This document shows, in pieces, positions 2,831 to 48,472 of a stretch of DNA of 64,000 nt. Made by a program: the position numbers and the translations under genes. Below the pieces are notes generated by a model. That model worked only from the letters and a program-made list of their open reading frames with translations, did no database searches and was not told where the DNA came from. The stretch lies in the sequence record OR805293.1, one strand, 5' to 3'. How positions within the stretch are numbered: the first letter of the stretch is position 1; every line of letters begins with the position of its first letter.

Positions 2831-5050
2831 ATGGATAGCCAAAAGAAACTGAATACTGTACTTACTGAAGCAAAAAAACTTGCAGTAAGTCACCAACACG
2901 AAGCCATTACTTCAGATCATGTATTGTATGTTTTATTAGGATACGACGAAGTAAAGGACTGTGTTAAAAACTGCAATGCAGACCCGGATCAATTAACTAA
3001 AGCAGTATCTGATTTCCTTGTTACCCAGTTGGGAAAATCCCGACACATAACTGATATGAATATCGATATCAGTCCCTCTCTTAGTCGCTGGTGCCAGCAA
3101 TTGGCAACTAAAATTGCATTAGATCCTAACAAAGCAATGACGTATGTCGATATGCTCGATGCACTCATCAAAGACACCAGTTGCAATGCAAGCCAGCTTC
3201 TCGCGCACTATGGTGTTACTACTGCTGTAGTAACTGAAGCGAAGAAATCTGCAGAAGCAGAATCCCTCATAAAGTCGTTTACTCGCAATCTTAACGACGA
3301 AGTATCTGAAGGCAAAATCGATCCGGTTATCGGCCGGGAAACTGAACTAGAAGAAGTTATCGAAGCCCTCGCCCGCCGGCGAAAAAACAATTGCATTCTT
3401 ACCGGCAAAGAAGGTGTAGGTAAGACGGCAATTGCCGAAGGGTTGGCGATGAAAATCGTCAATGGTGAGGTCCCTGAAGCAATTGCTGACAAACAAGTTA
3501 TTTCACTCGATATCGGCGCGATGATGGCAGGCACTAAATATCGCGGCGAGTTCGAAGAGCGTATGAAAGCGCTGCTAGACGAACTAAAAGCAATGAAAAA
3601 TGCCATCGTCTTCATTGACGAAATACATATGATCATGGGCGCCGGTGCAAGTAATGGTTCGTCAGTAGACGCTGCTAACCTGCTCAAGCCAGAATTAGCA
3701 AAAGGAACACTTCGTTGCATAGGCGCAACTACCTACGACGAATACAGTACCCACTTCGAAAAAGATCGGGCATTAATGCGCCGGTTCCAAAAAGTGGATG
3801 TTCCGCCGCCTAGTGTAGGCGACACTAAAAAAATAGTTGCCGGACTAAAGCAATATTACGAAGAGTTCCATGGTGTCAAATACGATGTAGGGACTCTAGA
3901 TCTGGCAGTCGATTTGACTGAACGATACATCAAAACTCGGCACCAGCCCGACAAATCAATCGATGCAATAGACTTAGTCGGCGCCAGAGCTAAATTAGCA
4001 GGGATCTCTACCATTACCGAGCGTATGGTCATAGAAACTGTAGCTAAATTAGCTCATATGCGTCCGGAAATGCTGGATAACACCGAAAACGACACTATTG
4101 CTCGTCTAGAAGGTAACCTCAAACACGATGTGTTTGGGCAAGACGAAGCTATTAACAAGCTCTGCGAAGCAGTAATGGTACACAAAGCAGGACTTCGAGA
4201 TGCTAATAAGCCGATTGGTAACTTCTTATTAGTAGGTCCGACCGGTACTGGCAAAACGTTCTTGGCAAAAAAACTATCCCAACATATGGGTATTCCTTTG
4301 GTGCGGTTCGATATGTCTGAATACCAAGAACAGCATAGCGTCGCCCGGTTGCTGGGCGCCCCGCCCGGATATGTAGGGCACGGCGAAGGTGAAGCTGGCG
4401 CTGGGCAGTTAATCTCTGAGATTGAAAAAAATCCCAACTGCATCTTGTTGCTAGACGAAATCGAAAAAGCACACCCGAAGGTATTTAGTACGTTCCTTCA
4501 GGTTATGGATGACGCCCGACTAACTTCGTCAACTGGCAAAACTGTATTCTTCGGTAACGTTTTGCTACTAATGACATCTAACTCCGGCGCTGCTCAAGCT
4601 GCTAAAGCATCGATCGGATTTGGAAATAATTTTAACGACGGTGCAATAGATAGCGCAGTTACAAAAGGATTTGCGCCTGAATTCCGGAACAGGCTCGACG
4701 GCATTGTTAAGTTCTCGGCGCTCACTATCAACGAAATGTCTAAGATTGTAGACACTGAGTTTGCTAAAGTACAAGCAAGTGTACTAGAAAAAGGCGTATC
4801 GTTGATCCTTACCCAAGAAGCACGTCAAAAATTAGCAACAGATGGATATGATCCCAAGATGGGAGCCCGTCCGCTCGCGAGGCTGTTCCAGGAGAAAGTC
4901 AAGTTGCCGCTGTCAAAGCTGATGCTACTTGGCGATCTTAAAAATGGCGGTCACGCAGAAGTCAGGGTAGTAGCAGACGAAGTTGTAGTTATACAAGCAA
5001 TTGCCCCTGCTACTAAAGCTAAAAAGAAAATAGACCAAACTGTAGTTTAA
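2831..5050 (+). CDS. clpA: ClpA-like Hsp100 AAA+ ATPase
   Basis: N-domain; two Walker A motifs (GKEGVGKT, GPTGTGKT); Walker B IDEIH and LLDEIEKAH; no ClpB M-domain; ClpP-docking IGF loop (KASIGFG). Confidence 0.92.
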   Translation: MDSQKKLNTVLTEAKKLAVSHQHEAITSDHVLYVLLGYDEVKDCVKNCNADPDQLTKAVSDFLVTQLGKSRHITDMNIDISPSLSRWCQQLATKIALDPNKAMTYVDMLDALIKDTSCNASQLLAHYGVTTAVVTEAKKSAEAESLIKSFTRNLNDEVSEGKIDPVIGRETELEEVIEALARRRKNNCILTGKEGVGKTAIAEGLAMKIVNGEVPEAIADKQVISLDIGAMMAGTKYRGEFEERMKALLDELKAMKNAIVFIDEIHMIMGAGASNGSSVDAANLLKPELAKGTLRCIGATTYDEYSTHFEKDRALMRRFQKVDVPPPSVGDTKKIVAGLKQYYEEFHGVKYDVGTLDLAVDLTERYIKTRHQPDKSIDAIDLVGARAKLAGISTITERMVIETVAKLAHMRPEMLDNTENDTIARLEGNLKHDVFGQDEAINKLCEAVMVHKAGLRDANKPIGNFLLVGPTGTGKTFLAKKLSQHMGIPLVRFDMSEYQEQHSVARLLGAPPGYVGHGEGEAGAGQLISEIEKNPNCILLLDEIEKAHPKVFSTFLQVMDDARLTSSTGKTVFFGNVLLLMTSNSGAAQAAKASIGFGNNFNDGAIDSAVTKGFAPEFRNRLDGIVKFSALTINEMSKIVDTEFAKVQASVLEKGVSLILTQEARQKLATDGYDPKMGARPLARLFQEKVKLPLSKLMLLGDLKNGGHAEVRVVADEVVVIQAIAPATKAKKKIDQTVV

Positions 5051-25448: not shown

Positions 25449-25474
25449 ATATGCAATGTTTAACGGAGTTAACA

Positions 25475-25750
25475 ATGACTGACATTAATCCAAATTCTCG
25501 CCATTATTCTGCTGAAGACGTCCGGCGAATTAAACAGTTAGTTTCCGAAGGCATGCAAGTCATGCAAGAAATTGAAGATTTAAAAACCGGACTAGCAGAA
25601 ACAGTTAAAGCAATTGCAGAAGAAGTAAATGTTAAGCCTTCCCAGCTTAATAAAGTTATTAAAATCGCACATAAACGTTCTTTAAACGAAGAACTAGATA
25701 AGATTAACGAAGTAGAAGAGATTCTAGACGCAATTAAAGAAGGTCGTTAA
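25475..25750 (+). CDS. T4 DsbA/GapR-like dsDNA-binding protein
   Basis: Helical ~91 aa protein; ATG 25475 with GGAG RBS; similar layout to T4 DsbA (IEDLK..L.E..K...EE..V....LNKVIK..HK). Confidence 0.6.
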   Translation: MTDINPNSRHYSAEDVRRIKQLVSEGMQVMQEIEDLKTGLAETVKAIAEEVNVKPSQLNKVIKIAHKRSLNEELDKINEVEEILDAIKEGR

Positions 25751-25762
25751 TATTTTCAAAAC

Positions 25763-25787
25763 AAGCCGTGCTTTTGCGCGGCTTTTT
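25763..25787 (+). terminator. Intrinsic terminator between the dsbA-like gene and polB
   Basis: aagccgtgc-tttt-gcgcggctt followed by Ts. Confidence 0.75.
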
Positions 25788-25803: not shown

Positions 25804-28215
25804 ATGTACATCGATATTTTCGAAGATAAGAAAAATGAAATACTTCTAGTTGCAGAACGATCTGCAGGCAAACGAATATACAAACAATACCCTATAGATC
25901 ATACATATTACATATTAGATGCAAACGGACCGTATAAAGATATATTCGGTAATAATGCTAAAGCAATTAAGCCATCTAGCATAAATGAAAAAATGACTCA
26001 AATGAAAATGCTAGATTTTTCGCAAACGTGCGAAATAGACGTCAGGCCAGAATTTAGATGCCTGGAAGTAAACTATAAGAATGCACCTATGCCAGATTTA
26101 CATGTTGCATTCTTCGATATCGAGACCGCGTTTGATCAAAAACGCGGTTATGCCGACCCGGCCGATCCTTTTAATCCCATTATATCAATATCTGTATATT
26201 TGCAATGGATGCAGCAAATGGTTTGCTTAGCATTAGCACCGGAGACTATATTACCAGAAGATGCACAACGCATAGCATCAGAAGTAGGCGAAACAATTAT
26301 ATGTAAAAATGAAAAAGAAATGCTAAGTATGTTTATTGACTTAGTAGAAGATGCAGATATTTTATCAGGTTGGAACTCAGAACGTTTCGATATTCCTTAT
26401 ACTTTTAACAGAATTGTAAAATTATTAGGTAAGAATGAACTAAGAAAATTATGCCTTTGGAATCTTATGCCCAAGAAGCGCAATATTGAACAAGAAGGCG
26501 GCAGTAGTTTTGTTACATTCGAAACGTTTGGTAGAATACATTTAGATTATCTTCAATTATATAAAAAATATAATTACGAAGAACGTCATAGTTACTCGTT
26601 AGATTCTATTTCGGAAATTGAACTAGGTGAACGAAAAGTTCCATACAACGGAACATTAGACAAACTTTATAAATATGATTTTAAAAAGTTTTTAGAATAT
26701 AACATTCAAGATACTCGACTCCTAGATAAGTTAGATAGAAAATTAAAATATATAGATCTAGCTTCCACTATTGCACATAGTAATTGCATTCCTATCCCTA
26801 CAGTTATGGGTGCAGTAGCTACAACCGAACAAGCAATTATAATCGAAGCACATAATAACGGCATGGTAGTGCCATCTAGGCAACGTTTTAAAAATAATGA
26901 TACACTTAAAGCTGCAGGCGGCTGGGTAGCATATCCTAAAGTAGGACTGCATAGAGATATTGGCTCCAGTGACTTAAATTCTCTGTATCCTTCTGTGTTA
27001 AGGGCACTAAACATGAGCCCAGAAACTATTATAGGACAAATTCGGTTAACACTTACTAACCCTGCAATCGAAGAATGGTGTGCAAAAGGCGGAACAAAAC
27101 ATACATTTGCTGCATGGTGGAACGATAGGTTTACCACTTTAGAAATGGAATATGTGTTAAACAAAGACAGGGGTACTATATTAACGTTAGATATGGCAGA
27201 CGGGCGCTCGTTTGAACTGTCAGGTGCCGAAATATACGAATTAGTATTCAACAGTGGTCAGAATTGGCATATCAGTGCTAACGGAACTATATTTACACAA
27301 GACAGAGCAGGTGTAATTCCGTTACTACTTACAAGATGGTATGCAGAACGTAAAGGGATGCAGAAAATTGCATCAGATTATAATTCTTTAGATAAAGAAC
27401 ACCATAGCGACAAAACTGTATTTTTAGAAGATAAATCGGTATTAGATGGAATATGCGTAGGCGAAGTTGAATTAGCAGACCATTATAATATTAATGATGT
27501 ATATGTTGCAGCTACATTAAAAAATCTTGTCGAATCAAAAAATTGGCAAGAAGTAGCAATATATATGAAAAAGTATGGATTAGAAGTATCGTCTGACAAT
27601 TCAATTGTTATGTCAGATTCCCATATGCAAACCGAATATTACGAATATTGGGATAAAGCCCAGTTAGTTCGTAAAATTGGATTGAACAGCTTATATGGCG
27701 GACTACTTAACGAACATTCTAGATTCTACGATAAAAGACTAGGACAGAGTACTACACTCACAGGGCGCTGTATCACTAGACATATGGCATCTAAAACAAA
27801 CGAAATGTTCACTGGCATTTACGATCACGAAGGCGATTGTGTAATTTATGGCGATACAGATAGTGTAGATGGATCAACTATCCTAAATACTTCTCTAGGT
27901 AAAATAACTATAGAAGAGTTGTTTAATGTGTCTGACAAGCATGTAGTTCATGCAGAAAAAGAATTTGCTTCGAATGAAGATGTTATGGTAATGTCGTGGG
28001 ACAATTCTGCAAAACAACCATATATGGGGCATATAAACTATGTGTACCGCCACGAAGTAGAAAAAGAGTTATTCGAAATAGAAGACAACAACGGAAATAA
28101 AGTTATTGTAACCGAAGATCATTCTATTATGGTTATACGTAATGCAGAACTACTAGAAGTTAAGCCCGCAGAGTTAACAGACAGTGATATAATATTATCT
28201 ATTGTATATGAATAA
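25804..28215 (+). CDS. polB: Family B DNA polymerase, N-terminal part fused to split-intein N fragment
   Basis: Exo I FFDIET, Exo II GWNSERFDIPY, Exo III YNIQD, motif A SDLNSLYPS, motif B KIGLNSLYG, motif C truncated YGDTD followed by intein sequence; ATG 25804 has AGGA RBS. Confidence 0.95.
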   Translation: MYIDIFEDKKNEILLVAERSAGKRIYKQYPIDHTYYILDANGPYKDIFGNNAKAIKPSSINEKMTQMKMLDFSQTCEIDVRPEFRCLEVNYKNAPMPDLHVAFFDIETAFDQKRGYADPADPFNPIISISVYLQWMQQMVCLALAPETILPEDAQRIASEVGETIICKNEKEMLSMFIDLVEDADILSGWNSERFDIPYTFNRIVKLLGKNELRKLCLWNLMPKKRNIEQEGGSSFVTFETFGRIHLDYLQLYKKYNYEERHSYSLDSISEIELGERKVPYNGTLDKLYKYDFKKFLEYNIQDTRLLDKLDRKLKYIDLASTIAHSNCIPIPTVMGAVATTEQAIIIEAHNNGMVVPSRQRFKNNDTLKAAGGWVAYPKVGLHRDIGSSDLNSLYPSVLRALNMSPETIIGQIRLTLTNPAIEEWCAKGGTKHTFAAWWNDRFTTLEMEYVLNKDRGTILTLDMADGRSFELSGAEIYELVFNSGQNWHISANGTIFTQDRAGVIPLLLTRWYAERKGMQKIASDYNSLDKEHHSDKTVFLEDKSVLDGICVGEVELADHYNINDVYVAATLKNLVESKNWQEVAIYMKKYGLEVSSDNSIVMSDSHMQTEYYEYWDKAQLVRKIGLNSLYGGLLNEHSRFYDKRLGQSTTLTGRCITRHMASKTNEMFTGIYDHEGDCVIYGDTDSVDGSTILNTSLGKITIEELFNVSDKHVVHAEKEFASNEDVMVMSWDNSAKQPYMGHINYVYRHEVEKELFEIEDNNGNKVIVTEDHSIMVIRNAELLEVKPAELTDSDIILSIVYE
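27862..28215 (+). mobile_element. Split intein N fragment (117 aa, Ser1, no cysteines)
   Basis: SVDGSTIL (block A) directly after YGDTD; INYVYRH; VIVTEDHS (block B TxxH); VKPAEL; then stop. Confidence 0.93.
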
Positions 28216-29890
28216 AGAATATTATCAGTCATACGCAAAAGAATTAAAAAAGAATAATAAGAAAGAATACAATCGTATTCTTTCTTTGTATGAGCCCGTA
28301 TTTGATAAATGGGTTGCATTCAAGTATTATATAGAAGGAATATCGCCGCCTGTATGTAAAGAATGTGGTAATAGAATAACTGTTTCGGCAAAACAAGCAG
28401 AATATCACACAGAATGCAAATATAATAAACACAAGTATTCATTTGATAAATTTATAAAATGCATAGATGATGACCAATACATATATTGTGTGTGGAATGG
28501 ATATATTCCGACATCTGACAATATAACATACAGATGCACTAAACACGGCATAATTGTTCAAAAACTTAGTTCTAGACTAAAAGGTCACAAATGCCAAAAA
28601 TGTTCAGCTGAGCGTAAAGTAAGTCTAGATAACTTTAATAACTGGAAAACGCAGTGTTCTAAAATACATAATAATTTTTATGATTATTCTGTATCTACTG
28701 ATTTTACATTCTTAACAAAAGATGTATCTATTAAATGTCCAATACATGGAATATTTAAACAAAAAGCAAACGTCCATCAATCAGGTCACGGTTGTAAAAA
28801 ATGCTCGTTCGAAGCTATCGGTCATAAATTATCATATGACACCGATTCTTTTATAGAAAGAAGTAATAACGTTCATAATAATTTTTATGACTATACCAAA
28901 ACTATATACACTAACATTAGAGATAAAGTTGTTATAACATGTCCGATACACGGCGACTTTAACCAGATAGCATATTATCATACTGCCGGGCACGGTTGTC
29001 AGAAATGCGGTTTAGATAAAGTAGCAGAAACTACATATAGATCTAAGGCAGAAATAGAAATATTCGATTTAGTTAAATCTTATTGCTCAGATACAATTCA
29101 TTCATACAATAAATTTGGGTTCGAATTAGACATATATGTTCCTAGTAAAAATCTTGCAATAGAATATAATGGACTTTATTGGCATTCTTCTAAACACATA
29201 GAAACTGATCAAAAATATAAAACATACCATCTTGATAAAACCACTACATGTGAACAAAATAATATCCAATTATTACACATTTTCGACAACGAATGGCATA
29301 CTAAAAAAGATATATGGATCTCGGTAATAAAAAATAAACTAGGTTTATCTAATAAAATATATGCAAGAAAAACAGAAATTAAAGAAGTTAAGTTCGATGA
29401 TGCAAAGCAATTCGCCGAAACGAATCATTTGCAAGGTCATGCACAATTTCGGCATGCATACGGATTGTATTATTCGGATCAATTAGTTTCTTTATTAACA
29501 ATTGCAAAGCCCAGGTTTAATAAAAATGCAAACTGGGAAATAGTAAGATTTTGTAACCTAAATAACACAAGTGTAATAGGTGGGTTTTCTAAATTATTAA
29601 AGGTAGTTTCTTGTAATTTTACAGGCAAGATAGTATCATATGCAAATAGGCGCTGGTCCGTAGGAAACGTTTATGAAAAAAACGGATTTGCTAAAACTTC
29701 AATAATAGCTCCTGGATTTTATTATACTGACTTCAAAGATACATATAATAGGTTATCTTTCTCTAAAGACAAGGCAAAAGTTAAATTAAAAAATTATAAT
29801 AATTCAGTTAGCGTAGTAGAAAATATTTACGCAAACGGATATGGCAGGATTTGGGATTCAGGAAATATTGTTTATACAAAGGATTTATAA
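28208..29890 (+). CDS. Free-standing homing endonuclease (Zn-finger repeats, Vsr/EDxHD-like nuclease, Mom/GNAT-like C-terminal domain)
   Basis: CxxHG...H..GHGCxxC repeats; ELDIY...AIEYNGLYWHS; WEIVRF...IVSYANRRWS.G.VY..NGF; sits between the intein halves. Confidence 0.8.
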   Translation: MNKEYYQSYAKELKKNNKKEYNRILSLYEPVFDKWVAFKYYIEGISPPVCKECGNRITVSAKQAEYHTECKYNKHKYSFDKFIKCIDDDQYIYCVWNGYIPTSDNITYRCTKHGIIVQKLSSRLKGHKCQKCSAERKVSLDNFNNWKTQCSKIHNNFYDYSVSTDFTFLTKDVSIKCPIHGIFKQKANVHQSGHGCKKCSFEAIGHKLSYDTDSFIERSNNVHNNFYDYTKTIYTNIRDKVVITCPIHGDFNQIAYYHTAGHGCQKCGLDKVAETTYRSKAEIEIFDLVKSYCSDTIHSYNKFGFELDIYVPSKNLAIEYNGLYWHSSKHIETDQKYKTYHLDKTTTCEQNNIQLLHIFDNEWHTKKDIWISVIKNKLGLSNKIYARKTEIKEVKFDDAKQFAETNHLQGHAQFRHAYGLYYSDQLVSLLTIAKPRFNKNANWEIVRFCNLNNTSVIGGFSKLLKVVSCNFTGKIVSYANRRWSVGNVYEKNGFAKTSIIAPGFYYTDFKDTYNRLSFSKDKAKVKLKNYNNSVSVVENIYANGYGRIWDSGNIVYTKDL

Positions 29891-30145
29891 ATGCATAATC
29901 TAACAAAACACCTTTTAGGTGTATTTTCTGCAAAAACAGAAGACGAAGAATATAAAAGTGCAAAAAGAGCGCTAGAAGAATTAAACAAAAATATAAAAGA
30001 AAGAGATCCTAATAAATTTAATGTGTCTTTAGGAAAGGTATCTAAAGTAACTAATTTAGGAAAAAAGAAACAATATGTATACGATATAGGGATGAAAAAT
30101 CCCGATAATCCGTATTTCTTTGGAAATAATATATTAGTTCACAAT
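29891..30145 (+). mobile_element. Split intein C fragment (85 aa incl. ~44-aa N-terminal leader)
   Basis: YVYDIGM (block F) ... YFFGNNILVHN (block G, penultimate His, terminal Asn), followed by Ser+1. Confidence 0.93.
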
Positions 30146-31030
30146 TCTTGCTATTTTACTGCATGGCCTGCAGTAAAAGACCTTGTAGAATCTGGCGAAA
30201 TGGAATGGGATAAAGATACTGTCATTAAATTATACGACAACGTTTCGTCGCAAGTAAGTGATACATTTCCGGAATTTTTAAAACAAACATTTAATGTTCC
30301 ATACAAAAACTCAGAAGGTGTTATTAAGTCGGGTAGGGAAATTGTAGCTACTTCTGGTCTTTTTATTAAAAAGAAACGTTATGCTGCTATGATGTATGAT
30401 AAAGAAGGTACTAGATACGACGACGAAAACAGCCCAGGAAAAGTAAAAGCAATGGGTCTGGACCTACGTCGGTCAGATACGCCTAAATTTGTCCAAACAT
30501 TCCTTATGGAAATTCTAGTTATGGTGCTAACACATAAAACAGAAGATGAAGTAATAGAATATATTCGAGAATTTAAAAAAGAATTTAATAAAATGAAACC
30601 GTGGGAAAAGGGAATGCCAAAAGGCGTCAACGGTATCAGTACATATGAAGATAAATTAGAAGAACACATGAATAAAAAGTTAGCAGGAAGAGAGTCTAGA
30701 ATCACTGTCCCCGGTCACGTGTCTGCTGCGATGAATTGGAATAAACTAAAGCTTATCAATAAAGACCTACATACTCCTAAAATCTCAGATGGTCAAAAAT
30801 GTGTTGTTTGTTATTTAAAAGAAACCGCAGACAATCATTTTACTAGTATAGCATATCCTGTAGATGAATTGCACTTACCAGAATGGTTTACGTCTTTGCC
30901 ATTTGATGAAGATTTAATGAGAGAAAAAGTAGTAGATAACAAAGTTAAGAACCTTTTAGGTATTCTAAAATGGGATTTTAGTAAAACAGAAGAAGCTGCT
31001 GCACACTTTGATTCGCTGTTTGGTTGGTAA
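29891..31030 (+). CDS. polB: Split-intein C fragment fused to C-terminal part of family B DNA polymerase
   Basis: After HN: SCYF completes YGDTD|SCYF; KKKRYA and KAMGLDLRRSDTP thumb motifs. Confidence 0.95.
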   Translation: MHNLTKHLLGVFSAKTEDEEYKSAKRALEELNKNIKERDPNKFNVSLGKVSKVTNLGKKKQYVYDIGMKNPDNPYFFGNNILVHNSCYFTAWPAVKDLVESGEMEWDKDTVIKLYDNVSSQVSDTFPEFLKQTFNVPYKNSEGVIKSGREIVATSGLFIKKKRYAAMMYDKEGTRYDDENSPGKVKAMGLDLRRSDTPKFVQTFLMEILVMVLTHKTEDEVIEYIREFKKEFNKMKPWEKGMPKGVNGISTYEDKLEEHMNKKLAGRESRITVPGHVSAAMNWNKLKLINKDLHTPKISDGQKCVVCYLKETADNHFTSIAYPVDELHLPEWFTSLPFDEDLMREKVVDNKVKNLLGILKWDFSKTEEAAAHFDSLFGW

Positions 31031-42532: not shown

Positions 42533-43084
42533 ATGAATAGTATAAAAATGAAATATTACACTAAATGGTTTTTGATGACACACAGAAATAAAATGTATGA
42601 TTTTAAGAATCTATCATTTTATATATTACTAGTAGGAAATGTAGTTTTTAATCCTATTATAGCGAGTTTCTTAATTATTCTCAAAATAATGCAATTATTG
42701 CAAAATAAACCAGAATATTTAGATACTATCCCTGTGCTTAATGAAGTATTTTATATGTTTGTTGCTGAGTTAGTTTCTATATCTTATCGGTTTATAAATA
42801 AAACACCCGATTATGAAATATTTCATTCTTCGTTTAACAAAAGAAAACCAAAACAACATAAAAATAATACATGTAAAAAAAGAAATGATCGCTGTATCGG
42901 GGAAGAAACAATTAGCAATAAAAGATCATCATTTTATAATACAGGTGTTAAACTATATAAAGACAGCAAAGATAAAAGAAAACGATATGCTTATCCTAGG
43001 CAATCCGGTCCGCTGAGCCCCTGCTGGTATCCTACATTTAGACTTCCTAAATATTTTAAGAGAAAAAAGAAAAAAGGGCTATAA
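42533..43084 (+). CDS. Hypothetical membrane protein with basic C-terminus
   Basis: Hydrophobic segment(s) followed by a K/R-rich tail. Confidence 0.55.
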   Translation: MNSIKMKYYTKWFLMTHRNKMYDFKNLSFYILLVGNVVFNPIIASFLIILKIMQLLQNKPEYLDTIPVLNEVFYMFVAELVSISYRFINKTPDYEIFHSSFNKRKPKQHKNNTCKKRNDRCIGEETISNKRSSFYNTGVKLYKDSKDKRKRYAYPRQSGPLSPCWYPTFRLPKYFKRKKKKGL

Positions 43085-43096
43085 TTGCCCTTTTTT
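43071..43096 (+). terminator. Rho-independent terminator
   Basis: aaaaagggc-tataatt-gcccttttt. Confidence 0.8.
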
Positions 43097-43286
43097 AATG
43101 ATTAAAAAATTACGTTTTACTATGTTGACTAACTATATAGTTATTTGCTTTAATAACATCCTGCTTTGCAAAACAACAAATAATAGCATTCATAAAAATT
43201 GTTAATTATGTGTTGTTTTAAAAGCTACAAGCTGTAAAATGTAGGTGTTAAACAGCAAAACATATTCAACCACAGAGGCATTATAG

Positions 43287-44402
43287 ATGGCTAAAAAAGA
43301 AAACATCGTAGAAACGTATCTTCGTCCGACGGAGTGTGCTGCAATTATCCGCGGCATGTTCAAGGCGAAGCGTCCTGTGTTCCTCTGGGGTCCGCCGGGG
43401 GTAGGCAAGTCGGATATCATCGCCCAGTTGGGTTTCGAGGCTGACCGGCCGGTCATCGACATGCGTCTGATCCTCATGGATCCCACTGATATTAAGGGCA
43501 TTCCGTACTACGATCCGAAAACCAATACCATGCGCTGGGCTATTCCGTCCGATCTTCCGCAACCCGGCGAAACTACCCTGGACAACGCCATCCTGTTCCT
43601 GGACGAAATGAACTCGGCGCCGGCGAGCGTGCAGGGCGCTGCGTATCAGCTCATCCTGAACCGTGCTATCGGTTCGTATAAGCTGCCCGATGGCGTCGAC
43701 ATTGTCGCTGCTGGTAACCGCGATACCGACAAGGGCGTTACTTATCGTATGCCTAGTCCGTTGGCCAACCGTTTCGTTCACTTGCAGATCGAAACCAACT
43801 TCGAGGACTGGCAGCAGTGGGCGCTTAACAACACGGTACACCCGGATGTAGTTGGCTACCTCACCCAGCACAAGCAGAACCTGTTCTGCTTCGATCCCCA
43901 AGATCGTAGCAAGGCGTTTGCTACTCCGCGAGCTTGGAAGTTCGTGTCCGACATCCTCCAACTCGCAGGAATCAACAAGGACCATCTGCTACGTGCGACT
44001 ATCGCAGGAACCGTCGGCGAAAGTCACAGCTACTCCTTCATGCAGCACATGAAGTATGCTTCGCAGCTTCCGAAGCCGGAAGATGTACTAACCGGCCGGG
44101 TAACCGATCTCAAAGTCGAAGAGATCAGTGCTCGTTACTCGCTCGTGGTCAGTATGTGCTACACTCTAAAAGAGTGGCTGGCTGACGTAGCTGACGCCGA
44201 CAAAAAGTACACTACCGAGGATTGGCACAAGTCGGTAAACTTGTTCTTCGAGTACATGATGAACAACTTTGCCCAAGAAATGGTCATCCTCGGCGCGCGT
44301 ACTGCGTTGCGCGAATACCAACTGCCGATCAACAGAAAGTTGATCCCTTGCTTCACTAAGTTCTTCCAAGAGTACGGCAAGTTTATTGTCGACTCGAACT
44401 AA
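43287..44402 (+). CDS. MoxR-family AAA+ ATPase
   Basis: Walker A GPPGVGKS, Walker B LFLDE, AAGNR, PLANRF; GAGG RBS; GC-rich codons. Confidence 0.9.
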   Translation: MAKKENIVETYLRPTECAAIIRGMFKAKRPVFLWGPPGVGKSDIIAQLGFEADRPVIDMRLILMDPTDIKGIPYYDPKTNTMRWAIPSDLPQPGETTLDNAILFLDEMNSAPASVQGAAYQLILNRAIGSYKLPDGVDIVAAGNRDTDKGVTYRMPSPLANRFVHLQIETNFEDWQQWALNNTVHPDVVGYLTQHKQNLFCFDPQDRSKAFATPRAWKFVSDILQLAGINKDHLLRATIAGTVGESHSYSFMQHMKYASQLPKPEDVLTGRVTDLKVEEISARYSLVVSMCYTLKEWLADVADADKKYTTEDWHKSVNLFFEYMMNNFAQEMVILGARTALREYQLPINRKLIPCFTKFFQEYGKFIVDSN

Positions 44403-45382: not shown

Positions 45383-45736
45383 ATGATCGTCAGCGAGATT
45401 ATATATTCTATTTTCATAGCTGCATTAATAACAGTTATGACTATACTATATATAAGTCTCAGAATAATAACATGTAAGATATTAAATAAGTCATTAAAGA
45501 TTTCAGCTAATGTAATTATATATGGTACCTCTAATATAGAATATGTATATATTCCTGAAATAAAATATAAATTTCTTTCTTTTAAAATAACACATTCTGG
45601 TTTAGTTATGTTTGATAAAGAGTTTGGATTTAGGACACTAAACGATGCCATAAATGCATTAAATATGTATGTAGACACCGATATTATAAAAATAGTATAT
45701 AAAAAGGTACCCACATTTTATACTTGGCACGAATAA
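45383..45736 (+). CDS. Membrane-anchored hypothetical protein (paralogue 3 of 3)
   Basis: N-terminal TM helix; ends TLNDAI..L..Y......KIVYKK. Confidence 0.6.
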   Translation: MIVSEIIYSIFIAALITVMTILYISLRIITCKILNKSLKISANVIIYGTSNIEYVYIPEIKYKFLSFKITHSGLVMFDKEFGFRTLNDAINALNMYVDTDIIKIVYKKVPTFYTWHE

Positions 45737-47232
45737 TGGATAATTTTGATATAGAATTAAAAGAACTCATAAAAAATACAAATCCTAACGCATTAGGAAA
45801 TGTAGTAAAAAGTAAAAAAGAAATATATGAGGAATTAGTTCGACGAACTAATTCCTTTCTTCGTGACGACGTTTCTGTAACAGAAAGGATTCATATATAC
45901 TTAAATCCGGATGATAATGTTTACTGTAAGTATGATAACAAACGGACACTAAAGCGAAATAAAGATACAAAACAAACCCAATACGGATTTTGCGGAAATA
46001 AAAGTAAATGTAAATGTCATATGGAATGGTCTTTAAAAAATCATCCAGGCATGACAAAATCCGGAAAAGAAAGTATGAAAACAAAGAGGATAAAAACCTG
46101 GATAGAAAAATACGGTGTCGATAATCCATCTAAGTCAAAAGATATTATTGCAAAACAGCAATTAAGTAAAAAACATATAAAGCCAGATCATAGAACTATA
46201 AAGGAACTGGGATATAAAAAAGTAGTAGAACGGCTTTCTAACATACTCACCCCTACGTTTAGTATAGACGAGTACGAAGGGTGCTTTAGAAAAAATGTGT
46301 ATGACTGGGTATGCAATGCATGCGGAAATATAGTTATCGGACACGTAGATTATGGGTCTACTCCGAGGTGCAATGTTTGTAATCCTATAACAAAGTCTGC
46401 CGGCGAGAATGAAATATCTAACTATATAGTATCGCTAGGATTTGATGTGATTAACAATGACCGAACTATATTATCTAACAAAGAATTAGATATAGTAATT
46501 AAAGGTACAAACATAGCAATAGAATATAATGGTTGTTATTGGCATTCTACAAAACACAGAAAAAAATCATATCATGTAGATAAATTTATAGAATGCAGAG
46601 ATAAAGGAATAAAGTTAATACAAATTTTAGATGTAGATTGGATATCAAAACAAGACATAATAAAATCAAGGTTAAAATCTATTTTAGGTTGTAGTGATAG
46701 AATATATGCAAGGAATACAACTATAAAAGAAATAACATTTAACGAATCTTTAACTTTTTTAGAAGAAACTCACATCCAAGGTTCTTGTCAATCATCTGTA
46801 AGACTAGGTCTATACGACAATGAGAATTTGTTAGTAGCCGTAATGACATTTGGGAAATCTAGATATACAAAAGAGGAATATGAATTACTTAGATATGCTA
46901 GCAAAAATACTGTTGTAGGAGGAGCCAGCAAACTTCTTAAATATTTCATAAAAACATATTCCCCTAAATCTATTATTACATATGCAGATAGGTGTTGGTC
47001 AGATGGAAATTTATATAAACAACTCGGGTTTACAAATGTAACTAAGAATGACAGAAATACAGGATATTGGTATATAAAAGACAACATAAAATATCATAGA
47101 TCTAATTTCATAAAATCTAAGATTTCTAATAAAAATAATTTACATCTAAGCGAATCGGAAATAATGGATAGTTTAGGTTATTTAAAATATTACGATTGCG
47201 GCAATTACAAATATACATTGCAGGTACGCTAG
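45724..47232 (+). CDS. Second free-standing Vsr/EDxHD-like homing endonuclease with Mom/GNAT-like C-domain
   Basis: CxxC..CxxC Zn ribbon, ELDI...AIEYNGCYWHS, IYAR.T.IKE, YELLRY...ITYADR.WS.G.LY..LGF; clear paralogue of 28208-29890. Confidence 0.8.
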   Translation: MARIMDNFDIELKELIKNTNPNALGNVVKSKKEIYEELVRRTNSFLRDDVSVTERIHIYLNPDDNVYCKYDNKRTLKRNKDTKQTQYGFCGNKSKCKCHMEWSLKNHPGMTKSGKESMKTKRIKTWIEKYGVDNPSKSKDIIAKQQLSKKHIKPDHRTIKELGYKKVVERLSNILTPTFSIDEYEGCFRKNVYDWVCNACGNIVIGHVDYGSTPRCNVCNPITKSAGENEISNYIVSLGFDVINNDRTILSNKELDIVIKGTNIAIEYNGCYWHSTKHRKKSYHVDKFIECRDKGIKLIQILDVDWISKQDIIKSRLKSILGCSDRIYARNTTIKEITFNESLTFLEETHIQGSCQSSVRLGLYDNENLLVAVMTFGKSRYTKEEYELLRYASKNTVVGGASKLLKYFIKTYSPKSIITYADRCWSDGNLYKQLGFTNVTKNDRNTGYWYIKDNIKYHRSNFIKSKISNKNNLHLSESEIMDSLGYLKYYDCGNYKYTLQVR

Positions 47233-47246
47233 CATAATGTTATACT
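47218..47246 (+). promoter_or_regulatory. sigma70-type promoter for the vWA gene
   Basis: TTGCAG-17bp-TATACT(TGTA). Confidence 0.7.
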
Positions 47247-47287
47247 TGTAACGTAACACAAAACATATCATTTTAACGGAGCATTAT

Positions 47288-48472
47288 ATGTCCACTAAAA
47301 CCCTAGAAGAACGCATCATCCGCGCCCGTGTTCAGTTGCTGTTGAACCATCCGTTTTTCGGGACCTTGGCGCTGCGCCTTAAACTAGTCGAGGCGAACGA
47401 CTGGTGCCCTACTGCCGGTACTGATGGACGCCATCTTTATTATAATACCAAGTTCCTCGAAGACTTGGACGATAAGGAACTTATCTTCCTCATCGGTCAT
47501 GAGGTAATGCACGTCGTCTACGACCACATGGGACGGCGTGGCAGCAGAGAGCCTAAACTGTGGAACTGTGCTGCCGACTTTGTTATCAACCTCGAATTGC
47601 ACGATATGAAAATCGGCAAGCTTATCCACCGTCCGGGTACTTGCGAGCCGTGCTTTGATGAAAAGTACCGCGGAATGTCCGCTGACCAGATCTATGAACT
47701 AATTAAGAAAGATCCGTCACTAAAAGATAAAGATAGCTTCGACGTTCACCTCGAACCCGGTGGTGCCGGGAATGAAGACGGCGATGCTTCTGGCAAATCC
47801 GGTCCTATCCCTATGTCTGCAGATGAGCAAGCTGCTCTTCGGGACGAGATCACCGAAGCTGTTCTTCAGGCTGCTAAAGCTGCTGGTGTCGGCAACACTC
47901 CGGCAGGTGTGCGTCAGATGATCAGTGACATCACTGAACCTAAACTAGATTGGCGCGAATTGCTAAACCAGACTATTCCGTCGCACATTAAATCCGACTA
48001 TATGTGGACTCGTCCGTCGCGGAAGAGTTGGGGAACTGGTGCGACTCTGCCGGGTCAGATTGTTGATGACAAAATCGATGTTATCCTGGCACTAGACGCC
48101 TCTGGTTCGATTAGCTCTTCTCAGCTAAGAGATTTCTTAGGAGAAGTGTTAGGAATTATGGAACAGTTTAGTGACTTTTCCATACAAGTGCTAACGTTTG
48201 ATACTAGAGTGTATGAATTCCGAAAATATACTCCCGACAATGCAGACGAAATCTATGAGTATCCCCTTAAAGGCGGCGGCGGCACCGATTTTGTGGCTGT
48301 GTTTAACTTCCTTAAAGATACGCTCACTGAACCGCCGCATCAGTTAGTATTCTTCACTGACATGGAAGTGTATGACTACGGCGATCCTAACTATTGCGAT
48401 ACTGTGTTTATAAACCACGGTCGCAAAGGTGTAACTGCACCGTTTGGCATCACCATCGACTACGACGAATAA
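47288..48472 (+). CDS. vWA domain / HExxH metallopeptidase-like protein (DUF2201-type MoxR partner)
   Basis: TAGTDG, HEVMH, WNxAxDFVIN, MIDAS DASGS, TFDT, GGGTDF, FFTD; GGAG RBS. Confidence 0.88.
   Translation: MSTKTLEERIIRARVQLLLNHPFFGTLALRLKLVEANDWCPTAGTDGRHLYYNTKFLEDLDDKELIFLIGHEVMHVVYDHMGRRGSREPKLWNCAADFVINLELHDMKIGKLIHRPGTCEPCFDEKYRGMSADQIYELIKKDPSLKDKDSFDVHLEPGGAGNEDGDASGKSGPIPMSADEQAALRDEITEAVLQAAKAAGVGNTPAGVRQMISDITEPKLDWRELLNQTIPSHIKSDYMWTRPSRKSWGTGATLPGQIVDDKIDVILALDASGSISSSQLRDFLGEVLGIMEQFSDFSIQVLTFDTRVYEFRKYTPDNADEIYEYPLKGGGGTDFVAVFNFLKDTLTEPPHQLVFFTDMEVYDYGDPNYCDTVFINHGRKGVTAPFGITIDYDE

Follow-up and report, generated by a model that had tools for sequence, protein, structure and literature searches.

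A 64,000-nucleotide (nt) stretch of the genome of Pseudomonas phage Deifobo (record OR805293.1), called the window below, holds a family-B DNA polymerase gene (polB) that is broken in two inside its catalytic motif C, with an endonuclease gene lying between the halves. Judged from its sequence, the break very probably marks a functional trans-splicing split intein accompanied by a homing endonuclease. Deifobo is a PA5oct-like jumbo phage (Arenbergviridae, Wroclawvirus), and the locus occupies positions 25804-31030 of the window (5227 nt), which match nucleotides 87804-93030 of OR805293.1 with 100% identity. All positions are those of the window, and the parts of the locus are as follows.

25804-28215, + strand: polB-N open reading frame (ORF), with its ATG at 25804, made up of the N-extein, the intein N fragment (IntN) and a stop codon
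25804-27861, + strand: polB N-extein, 686 residues, exonuclease domain and polymerase domain up to motif C, ending ...CVIYGDTD
27862-28215, + strand: IntN, 117 residues and TAA (coding 27862-28212; TAA 28213-28215), matched by Pfam PF14890, TIGR01445 and PDB 9hth
28208-29890, + strand: putative homing endonuclease ORF, 560 residues, free-standing, Hef-type, TAA at 29888-29890
28340-29017, + strand: Zn-ribbon/DUF723 repeats (Pfam DUF723), about residues 45-270 of the nuclease
29018-29347, + strand: predicted EDxHD Vsr-like nuclease domain, residues 271-380, with E306, D308, E319, H326 and E362
29348-29887, + strand: Mom-like GNAT-fold C-terminal domain of the nuclease, residues 381-560 (from Foldseek, and Pfam Mom in a homologue)
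29891-31030, + strand: polB-C ORF, its ATG at 29891 adjoining the nuclease stop
29891-30022, + strand: N-terminal extension of the intein C fragment (IntC), residues 1-44, a predicted two-helix hairpin
30023-30145, + strand: IntC core, residues 45-85, blocks F and G, basic (+4), no Cys
30146-31030, + strand: polB C-extein, 294 residues and stop, Ser+1 at 30146-30148, SCYFTAWP..., the remainder of motif C, palm and thumb

The three ORFs abut or overlap: the nuclease ATG at 28208 lies over the stop codon of polB-N (ATGAATAA), and the nuclease stop runs straight into the start of polB-C (TAAATG), which has a Shine-Dalgarno-like AAGGA 8 nt upstream of its ATG. The N-extein matched Pfam DNA_pol_B_exo1 (5e-23) and DNA_pol_B (2e-20) and PHROG 262, and the C-extein matched PHROG 262, PHROG 1918 and Pfam DNA_pol_B. 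In GenBank the three genes are labelled 'DNA polymerase', 'putative Hef-like homing endonuclease' or 'HNH homing endonuclease III', and 'DNA polymerase'. A terminator-like hairpin (25763-25784) stands directly 5' of the polB-N ATG; the terminator scan found no convincing terminator between the three ORFs, and promoter-like matches were at background level in a promoter scan (39 vs 31 ± 6). A 6-bp hairpin at 29908-29922 (ACACCT TTT AGGTGT), 17 nt past the polB-C start codon, was flagged on both strands by the terminator scan; it could affect translation initiation or have no meaning.

Ser1 (27862-27864) follows YGDTD directly and opens the IntN sequence, SVDGSTIL...INYVYRH...VTEDHSIMV...IVYE, which is closed by TAA. 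IntC as a whole (29891-30145) has 85 residues and ends ...YVYDIGMKNPDNPYFFGNNILVHN, after which the polymerase resumes with SCYFTAWP. IntN was recognised by the Pfam Intein_splicing profile, PF14890 (profile positions 2-93, E 3.6e-11, 43.5 bits against a gathering score of 35.8), and by TIGR01445 intein_Nterm (35.9 bits against a cutoff of 24.5), and IntC fell on the complementary PF14890 positions 99-155 (E 1.9e-6). This division of one intein profile between the two fragments was counted in favour of a split intein. The best PDB match of IntN was 9hth (E 1.5e-11), in which the sequence aligned belongs to the Aes123 PolB1 intein, and the next were other inteins with Ser1, namely Mja TFIIB, PI-PkoII and PI-PfuI. 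For IntC the best PDB match was the cysteine-less PolB16 intein 8cpn (E 0.03).

Neither fragment contains Cys, with ten Cys in the N-extein, three in the C-extein (one of them at extein position +2) and 19 in the nuclease. IntN is acidic, with a net charge of -14 and an isoelectric point (pI) of 4.55; IntC is basic (+5, pI 9.5), and its last 40 residues carry +4. Ser1 aligns with Ser1 of the Aes123, PTm1 and SCTP-2 inteins. The block B motif T-x-x-H is present as VTEDHS (Thr84/His87; His at 28120-28122) and is kept in all aligned relatives. Arg63-His64 (INYVYRH; His at 28051-28053) aligns with K-H of Aes123 and R-H of PTm1 and SCTP-2. This corresponds to the NX motif of Pasch et al. (2023), in which the His is 'invariably preceded by an arginine or lysine' and which is specific to Ser1/Ser(Thr)+1 inteins (PMC10189870). 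On the C-terminal side, blocks F and G (...VYDI...FFGNNILVHN|S) supply Asp65 (30083-30085), His84 (30140-30142) and Asn85 (30143-30145). Across 54 relatives IntC residues V63, Y64, D65, M68, F76, F77, N79, L82 and N85 are invariant, as is Ser+1, and H84 is nearly so. The sequence evidence thus supports assignment of the element as a class-1 Ser1/Ser+1 cysteine-free split intein at polymerase motif C.

A first-pass annotation made from the letters of the window had described this layout: YGDTD, a 117-residue IntN with Ser1 and TEDH, a stop, a nuclease ORF, and an 85-residue IntC ending ILVHN before SCYF. Every one of these sequence details agrees with the ORFs and junctions. Its statements that the fragments lack Cys and use Ser nucleophiles (no Cys in 117 + 85 residues; Ser1 and Ser+1 both read), that IntN is acidic and the IntC core basic (-14 and +4), and that the ORFs abut or overlap were equally borne out, and the His of INYVYRH, which it had taken for the extra His of cysteine-less inteins, fits the [K/R]-His NX motif (PMC10189870).

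In the favoured mechanism the three ORFs would be translated separately, giving PolB(1-686)-IntN, the homing endonuclease and IntC-PolB with the C-terminal 294 residues. The acidic IntN (-14) and the basic IntC (+5) would meet electrostatically and fold into one HINT domain, which would catalyse class-1 protein trans-splicing through oxygen nucleophiles alone: a first N-O acyl shift at Ser1, helped by His87 of block B and His64 of the NX motif, then transesterification to Ser+1, cyclisation of Asn85 and an O-N shift. The product would be a 980-residue polymerase of ~113 kDa, made from precursors of 92 and 44 kDa, in which catalytic motif C is restored as YGDTD-SCYF, with the predicted splice-junction sequence ...VIYGDTDSCYFTAWPAVK and the predicted tryptic junction peptide TNEMFTGIYDHEGDCVIYGDTDSCYFTAWPAVK. 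The nuclease, for its part, would cut intein-free polB alleles of co-infecting relatives, and recombinational repair would copy the whole cassette in. The sequence analysis establishes the anatomy, the homology, the catalytic residues, their conservation and the presence of intein-free alleles in relatives, and from these the occurrence of splicing and homing is inferred.

The locus is preserved in all 11 known Wroclawvirus records. Ten further GenBank records carry all 5227 nt at 98.2-98.9% identity with no change in length: PA5oct (two records), MIJ3, Paride, Cassandra, Ettore, Callisto, PAC2, 30-2 and 30-3. Selection was compared among 10 genomes, from Poland (PA5oct, going by the genus name), Switzerland, Spain, Japan and Thailand, together with MIJ3, whose record gives no country. 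In all ten the three ORFs are intact, the splice junctions are identical, IntN and IntC are free of Cys, and both the stop after IntN and the start before IntC are kept. The ratio of nonsynonymous to synonymous polymorphism (pN/pS) is 0.026 for the N-extein, 0.052 for IntN and 0.10 for the whole endonuclease (0.028 for its nuclease domain), and it is 0 for the C-extein, which has no amino-acid change. All parts of the locus are under purifying selection among these genomes. IntC has only three variable sites in 255 nt, with a longest invariant run of 148 nt (29973-30120); low nucleotide diversity was dropped as a signal, as sliding windows at 27054-27303 and 28554-28803 are equally quiet.

A search with the C-half ORF gave 2341 metagenomic relatives at E<=1e-5, and the breakdown that follows is of the best 120. 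These comprise 86 split C halves that start with IntC, eight contiguous mini-inteins and 25 intein-free sequences with an uninterrupted motif C. Intein-free alleles at similar divergence read YGDTDSCYF or YGDTDSVYF, and YGDTDSCYFSAWP is uninterrupted in intein-less relatives; in one example, P0190, the corresponding stretch (IYGDTDSCYFSAWP) is essentially the predicted IYGDTD-SCYFTAWP product. Two cultured phages, Erwinia phage pEa_SNUABM_47 (VYGDTDSVYF) and Atu_ph07 (AYNDTDSAYF), are also intein-free at motif C. Of the 86 split C halves, 75 have Ser at +1, 11 have Thr and none has Cys, and in 69 the IntC lacks Cys. A long IntC (60-89 residues) is found in 68 of them, with a basic core of mean charge +3.6, and a short one (40-49 residues) in the other 18, with an acidic core of mean charge -4.9. 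Two diverged metagenome contigs, L016 (gut sample) and L017 (Logan assembly), carry the full arrangement of PolB-N/IntN, a Hef-type endonuclease of 560 or 571 residues and IntC/PolB-C; the L016 IntN has a charge of -21.

Homologous inteins were seen at two sites two residues apart, DTD|S...HN|S and GD|S...(H/K)N|TDS, the sequences concerned being SCTP-2, L017, P0125 and P0134. Insertion at GD|S...N|TDS goes with Thr+1 and sometimes with Lys as the penultimate residue, and accounts for 11/86 split relatives as well as SCTP-2.

The long IntC owes its length to residues 1-44, which precede the canonical core. This extension is variable in sequence but kept throughout the long-IntC clade (68/86 split metagenomic relatives), and its counterpart in the contiguous inteins P0150, P0172 and P0181 joins block N4 to block F as a linker. 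AlphaFold2 (AF2) modelled it as helices at residues 3-12 and 17-37 (predicted local distance difference test, pLDDT, 84-91). The core (42-85) was disordered when IntC was modelled alone (pLDDT 36-61), as expected for a split-intein fragment without its partner; disorder-to-order behaviour of such fragments has been described (PMC12707363). A later start at the in-frame GTG 30023, which would give a canonical 41-residue IntC, was rejected because the 44 upstream codons are open, the ATG has its AAGGA, the extension recurs in the split relatives and as a linker in the contiguous ones, and the helical hairpin is predicted confidently.

The gene between the halves is predicted to encode a Hef-type homing endonuclease of the EDxHD (Vsr-like) lineage. 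Pfam detected only the DUF723 zinc-ribbon repeats on the whole protein, and the isolated nuclease core gave a weak match to the restriction-endonuclease-like MTES_1575 family. A profile built from 36 nuclease homologues (A1) found a single significant solved structure, 3r3p, the catalytic domain of I-Bth0305I (E 9.6e-5). That crystal is of the D196A/H213A mutant (PMC3239194), and its two Ala align exactly with D308 and H326 of the Deifobo nuclease; E319, the glutamate of AIE(Y/V)NG, aligns with 3r3p as well. Conservation in the 36 homologues is complete for D308, E319 and H326 and at least 90% for E306 and E362, and close homologues match Pfam Vsr, MTES_1575 and Mom (E 1.0e-5 to 1.8e-5). Taylor et al. 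(2011) named the Vsr-like lineage 'EDxHD' and placed the Hef-type phage endonucleases in it (PMC3239194), so the 'Vsr-like' of the first-pass annotation and the 'Hef-like' of GenBank are both right. The HNH label given in the MIJ3 paper and by PHROG 559 is unsupported: no Pfam HNH family matched the whole protein at E<=0.1 or its three parts at E<=10.

In the AF2 model of the nuclease (pLDDT 91), three repeats of a β-hairpin plus helices, which correspond to the Zn ribbons, precede an α/β nuclease core, and the last ~190 residues form a C-terminal domain. For this last domain the best Foldseek match was Mom of phage Mu, 8bv8 (E 6.6e-6), followed by GNAT acetyltransferases. With the whole model the GNAT/Mom-like domain dominates and neither Vsr nor 3r3p is listed, so the family assignment of the nuclease rests on sequence-profile evidence. 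The Mom-like domain may serve in DNA binding or in chemistry, and a preprint reports that PA5oct-type DNA carries a modified G (PMC12191111).

A second free-standing Hef-type paralogue lies at 45724-47232 (+ strand; likely ATG 45736, about 498 residues), and is closely followed by a DUF2201 metallopeptidase/VWA gene (47288-48472). The paralogue shares 37.5% identity with residues 272-557 of the polB-locus nuclease and has weak Pfam matches to MTES_1575 (1e-4) and Vsr (0.006).

The most serious alternative accepts trans-splicing of the intein and holds that the endonuclease is no longer homing in this lineage, having been fixed and retained to do something else, for instance to exclude or out-compete related phages that co-infect, or to act in connection with DNA modification through its Mom-like domain. 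The presence of the gene in all 11 Wroclawvirus records with no empty allele known in the genus, its purifying selection rather than decay (pN/pS 0.10; nuclease domain 0.028), the five places in the Deifobo genome that match its family and the resemblance of its C-terminal domain to Mu Mom are all consistent with this. Set against them is the patchy distribution of the cassette among equally related metagenomic PolBs (86 split, eight contiguous and 25 intein-free), the classic signature of ongoing homing, and the same endonuclease family accompanies the intein in the diverged contigs L016 and L017. Loss of homing is accordingly regarded as rather unlikely, and a homing endonuclease is the preferred interpretation.

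An intein whose halves are decaying, or do no more than bring the two polymerase pieces together non-covalently, leaving a two-subunit enzyme without ligation, is improbable. Two-piece PolBs of this kind exist in the same polymerase group: Aes123 has a T4-like gp43A/gp43B split and Atu_ph07 has two ORFs, both breaks lying upstream and lacking an intein (Aes123 L003 178-2552; Atu_ph07 L014 1416-4385). In Deifobo, however, the break falls inside motif C, between the catalytic DTD and Ser, so that an unspliced enzyme would have the ~200 intein residues in its active site. Ser1, Thr84/His87, His64, Asp65, His84, Asn85 and Ser+1 are all present and are invariant in the 10 genomes; the IntN pN/pS of 0.05 argues against decay; and homologous inteins at the same site do splice, as in Aes123.

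Joining at the RNA or translation level, by an mRNA intron or by a frameshift and stop read-through giving an intein-endonuclease fusion, is highly improbable. The first-pass annotation had seen no room for an intron, and indeed the DNA is fully occupied by conserved ORFs, Rfam gave no match either in 27500-30500 at the permissive threshold of E<=1 or across the whole window at gathering score, ARAGORN found no tRNA or tmRNA in the window, and RNA splicing would leave both intein fragments without a reason for conservation; the intron was rejected. The endonuclease ORF (28208) and polB-C (29891) do share a frame, one TAA apart, as do their counterparts in L016 (4501, 6196), but passage from polB-N to the endonuclease would require a +1 shift and the frame relations differ in L017 and Aes123, so there is no conserved recoding signal and the shared frame is probably a coincidence.

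Several points weigh against a functional trans-splicing intein with an active homing endonuclease. IntC alone scores under the PF14890 gathering score (28.2 vs 35.8 bits) and just under the TIGR01443 cutoff (15.0 vs 15.6). Its 44-residue extension is unusual. The cassette is in all 11 known Wroclawvirus records and no empty target allele is known within the genus, so that current homing activity is presumptive. The literature searched holds no experimental evidence for splicing or homing of this intein. Finally, the description of this polymerase as 'essential' and as the sole replicase is presumptive.

The element itself is already known. Imam et al. (2019, Front Microbiol, PMC6892783) reported a split PolB intein with the same block sequences in phage vB_PaeM_MIJ3 and remarked that it resembles the SCTP-2 mini-intein. 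The MIJ3 and Deifobo elements are one and the same: all 5227 nt align at 98.2% identity, the three ORFs correspond and blocks A, N2, B, F and G are shared, with two conservative substitutions in block N4 (A103T, E104D) between them. The MIJ3 paper calls the endonuclease HNH, whereas the present analysis places it in the EDxHD/Vsr-like lineage, and the passages of that paper on the intein, fractured genes and the homing endonuclease do not mention the lack of Cys, the histidine of the NX motif, the distribution of charge or the length of IntC. No paper in the literature searched reports a splicing test of this intein or remarks that it is free of Cys.

The wider architecture, the intein type and the endonuclease family are also in the literature. 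Dassa et al. (2009, NAR, PMC2677866) described 'fractured gene' loci of this kind, and the first-pass annotation had recognised the architecture, with a Vsr-like endonuclease; the free-standing 560-residue ORF and its profile match to 3r3p agree with this. Family-B DNA polymerase is outside the eight enzyme types of that study, and the Deifobo element occurs in cultured phages. The nuclease shares with I-Bth0305I (3R3P) a profile match over the nuclease domain with the catalytic D and H aligned, and annotators call its relatives 'Hef-like'. I-Bth0305I, in contrast, is intron-encoded and has NUMOD/HTH (helix-turn-helix) DNA-binding modules, where the Deifobo enzyme is free-standing and has three DUF723 Zn-ribbon repeats and a Mom-like GNAT-fold domain.

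Among inteins of cultured phages, tblastn found IntN homologues at 34-38% identity in Aeromonas phages (Aes123, Aes508, Aes512, Aes517, AS-gz and others), Tenacibaculum phages PTm1 and PTm5 and Salicola phage SCTP-2, with partial IntN matches in Campylobacter CP21-like phages, Lak megaphages and Vibrio VPALA. Homology to the Aes123 PolB1 intein, which the first-pass annotation had proposed, was confirmed by the 9hth match and by the shared DTD|S site, and the alignments to known inteins and intein-less polB alleles that it had recommended found Aes123, PTm1 and SCTP-2 homologous and the intein-less relatives contiguous at YGDTDSCYF. Aes123 (YIDTD|SVVGDTII...ILVHN|SVY) and PTm1 (YADTD|SVVGDSIL...ILVHN|SNY) have a homologous HINT domain, Ser1/Ser+1, the NX His, no Cys, the same site (DTD|S...HN|S) and a 'VSR endonuclease' gene between the halves. 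They differ from Deifobo in charge polarity, which is reversed (IntN/IntC +8/-11 in Aes123 and +8/-14 in PTm1, against -14/+5), in an IntC of 39-43 residues in the Aes-type against 85 with the helical extension, and in an endonuclease of 353 or 261 residues against 560 with Zn-ribbon repeats and a Mom-like domain. Only the nuclease core of the Aes123 Vsr endonuclease aligns with the Deifobo enzyme (E 0.005), and the Aes123 and PTm1 PolBs carry an additional upstream split. Outside the genus, the two closest relatives in cultured phages are the SCTP-2 PolB mini-intein (IntN 37%, E 2e-15; blocks F/G 64%) and the PTm1 intein (IntN 37.6%). Unlike the Deifobo intein, that of SCTP-2 is contiguous (163 residues), has no endonuclease and has two Cys, and its insertion point lies two residues upstream (YGD|S...KN|TDS), with Thr at +1 and Lys as the penultimate residue.

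Upstream of polB, a small ORF at 25451-25750 has weak DsbA-like (T4 dsDNA-binding transcription regulator) and helix-turn-helix matches. The gut contig L016 has a weak DsbA-like gene (1231-1509) a few genes upstream of its fractured polB, and a CTP_transf_like gene lies upstream of the fractured polB in both L016 and L017, which suggests conserved synteny. Elsewhere in the window GC islands of 44-48% stand at 3001-5000, 43001-44000 and 47001-48000 against ~27-38% for the rest; no tRNA genes or Rfam families were found in them.

Cysteine-less split inteins are scarce and sought after in biotechnology. By the account of a 2025 paper, a single highly efficient example had been reported before the second one that it describes (PMC12707363). 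Aes123 PolB1 is an experimentally used trans-splicing cysteine-less intein and the parent of the engineered CL and CLm (PMC11923092, PMC12707363), and cysteine-less PolB split inteins have already been mined as tools (Aes123 PolB1/CL/CLm, CP21 PolB1, LCGC14 PolB2, GOM-OPS-1 PolB2 and PolB16). The first-pass annotation had suggested that the element may be a new redox-insensitive ligation tool; that newness does not hold, the MIJ3 intein having been published in 2019 and several inteins of this type being engineered tools. A natural one with polarity opposite to the Aes123 family could nevertheless add an orthogonal pair. It is conceivable, if doubtful, that the Wroclawvirus intein represents a distinct and widespread natural subclass of cysteine-less PolB split inteins, with acidic IntN, basic IntC and a two-helix IntC module, that splices efficiently and is orthogonal to the CL/CLm and LCGC14 tools; the extension might then have a function of its own, for example in IntC solubility or in the timing of assembly.

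What is added here is modest and incremental: the cysteine-less status and NX motif of the intein, a corrected family for its endonuclease, the reversal of charge polarity, the two-helix IntC module and a large metagenomic clade with the same layout. Neither the biology nor the biotechnology is conceptually new, and the remaining value of the element is as a candidate orthogonal cysteine-less ligation tool. For the phages themselves, the Wroclawvirus locus offers a clean example, in cultured phages, of a fractured and presumably essential gene carried together with a putative homing endonuclease, whose replicase should exist only after protein trans-splicing.

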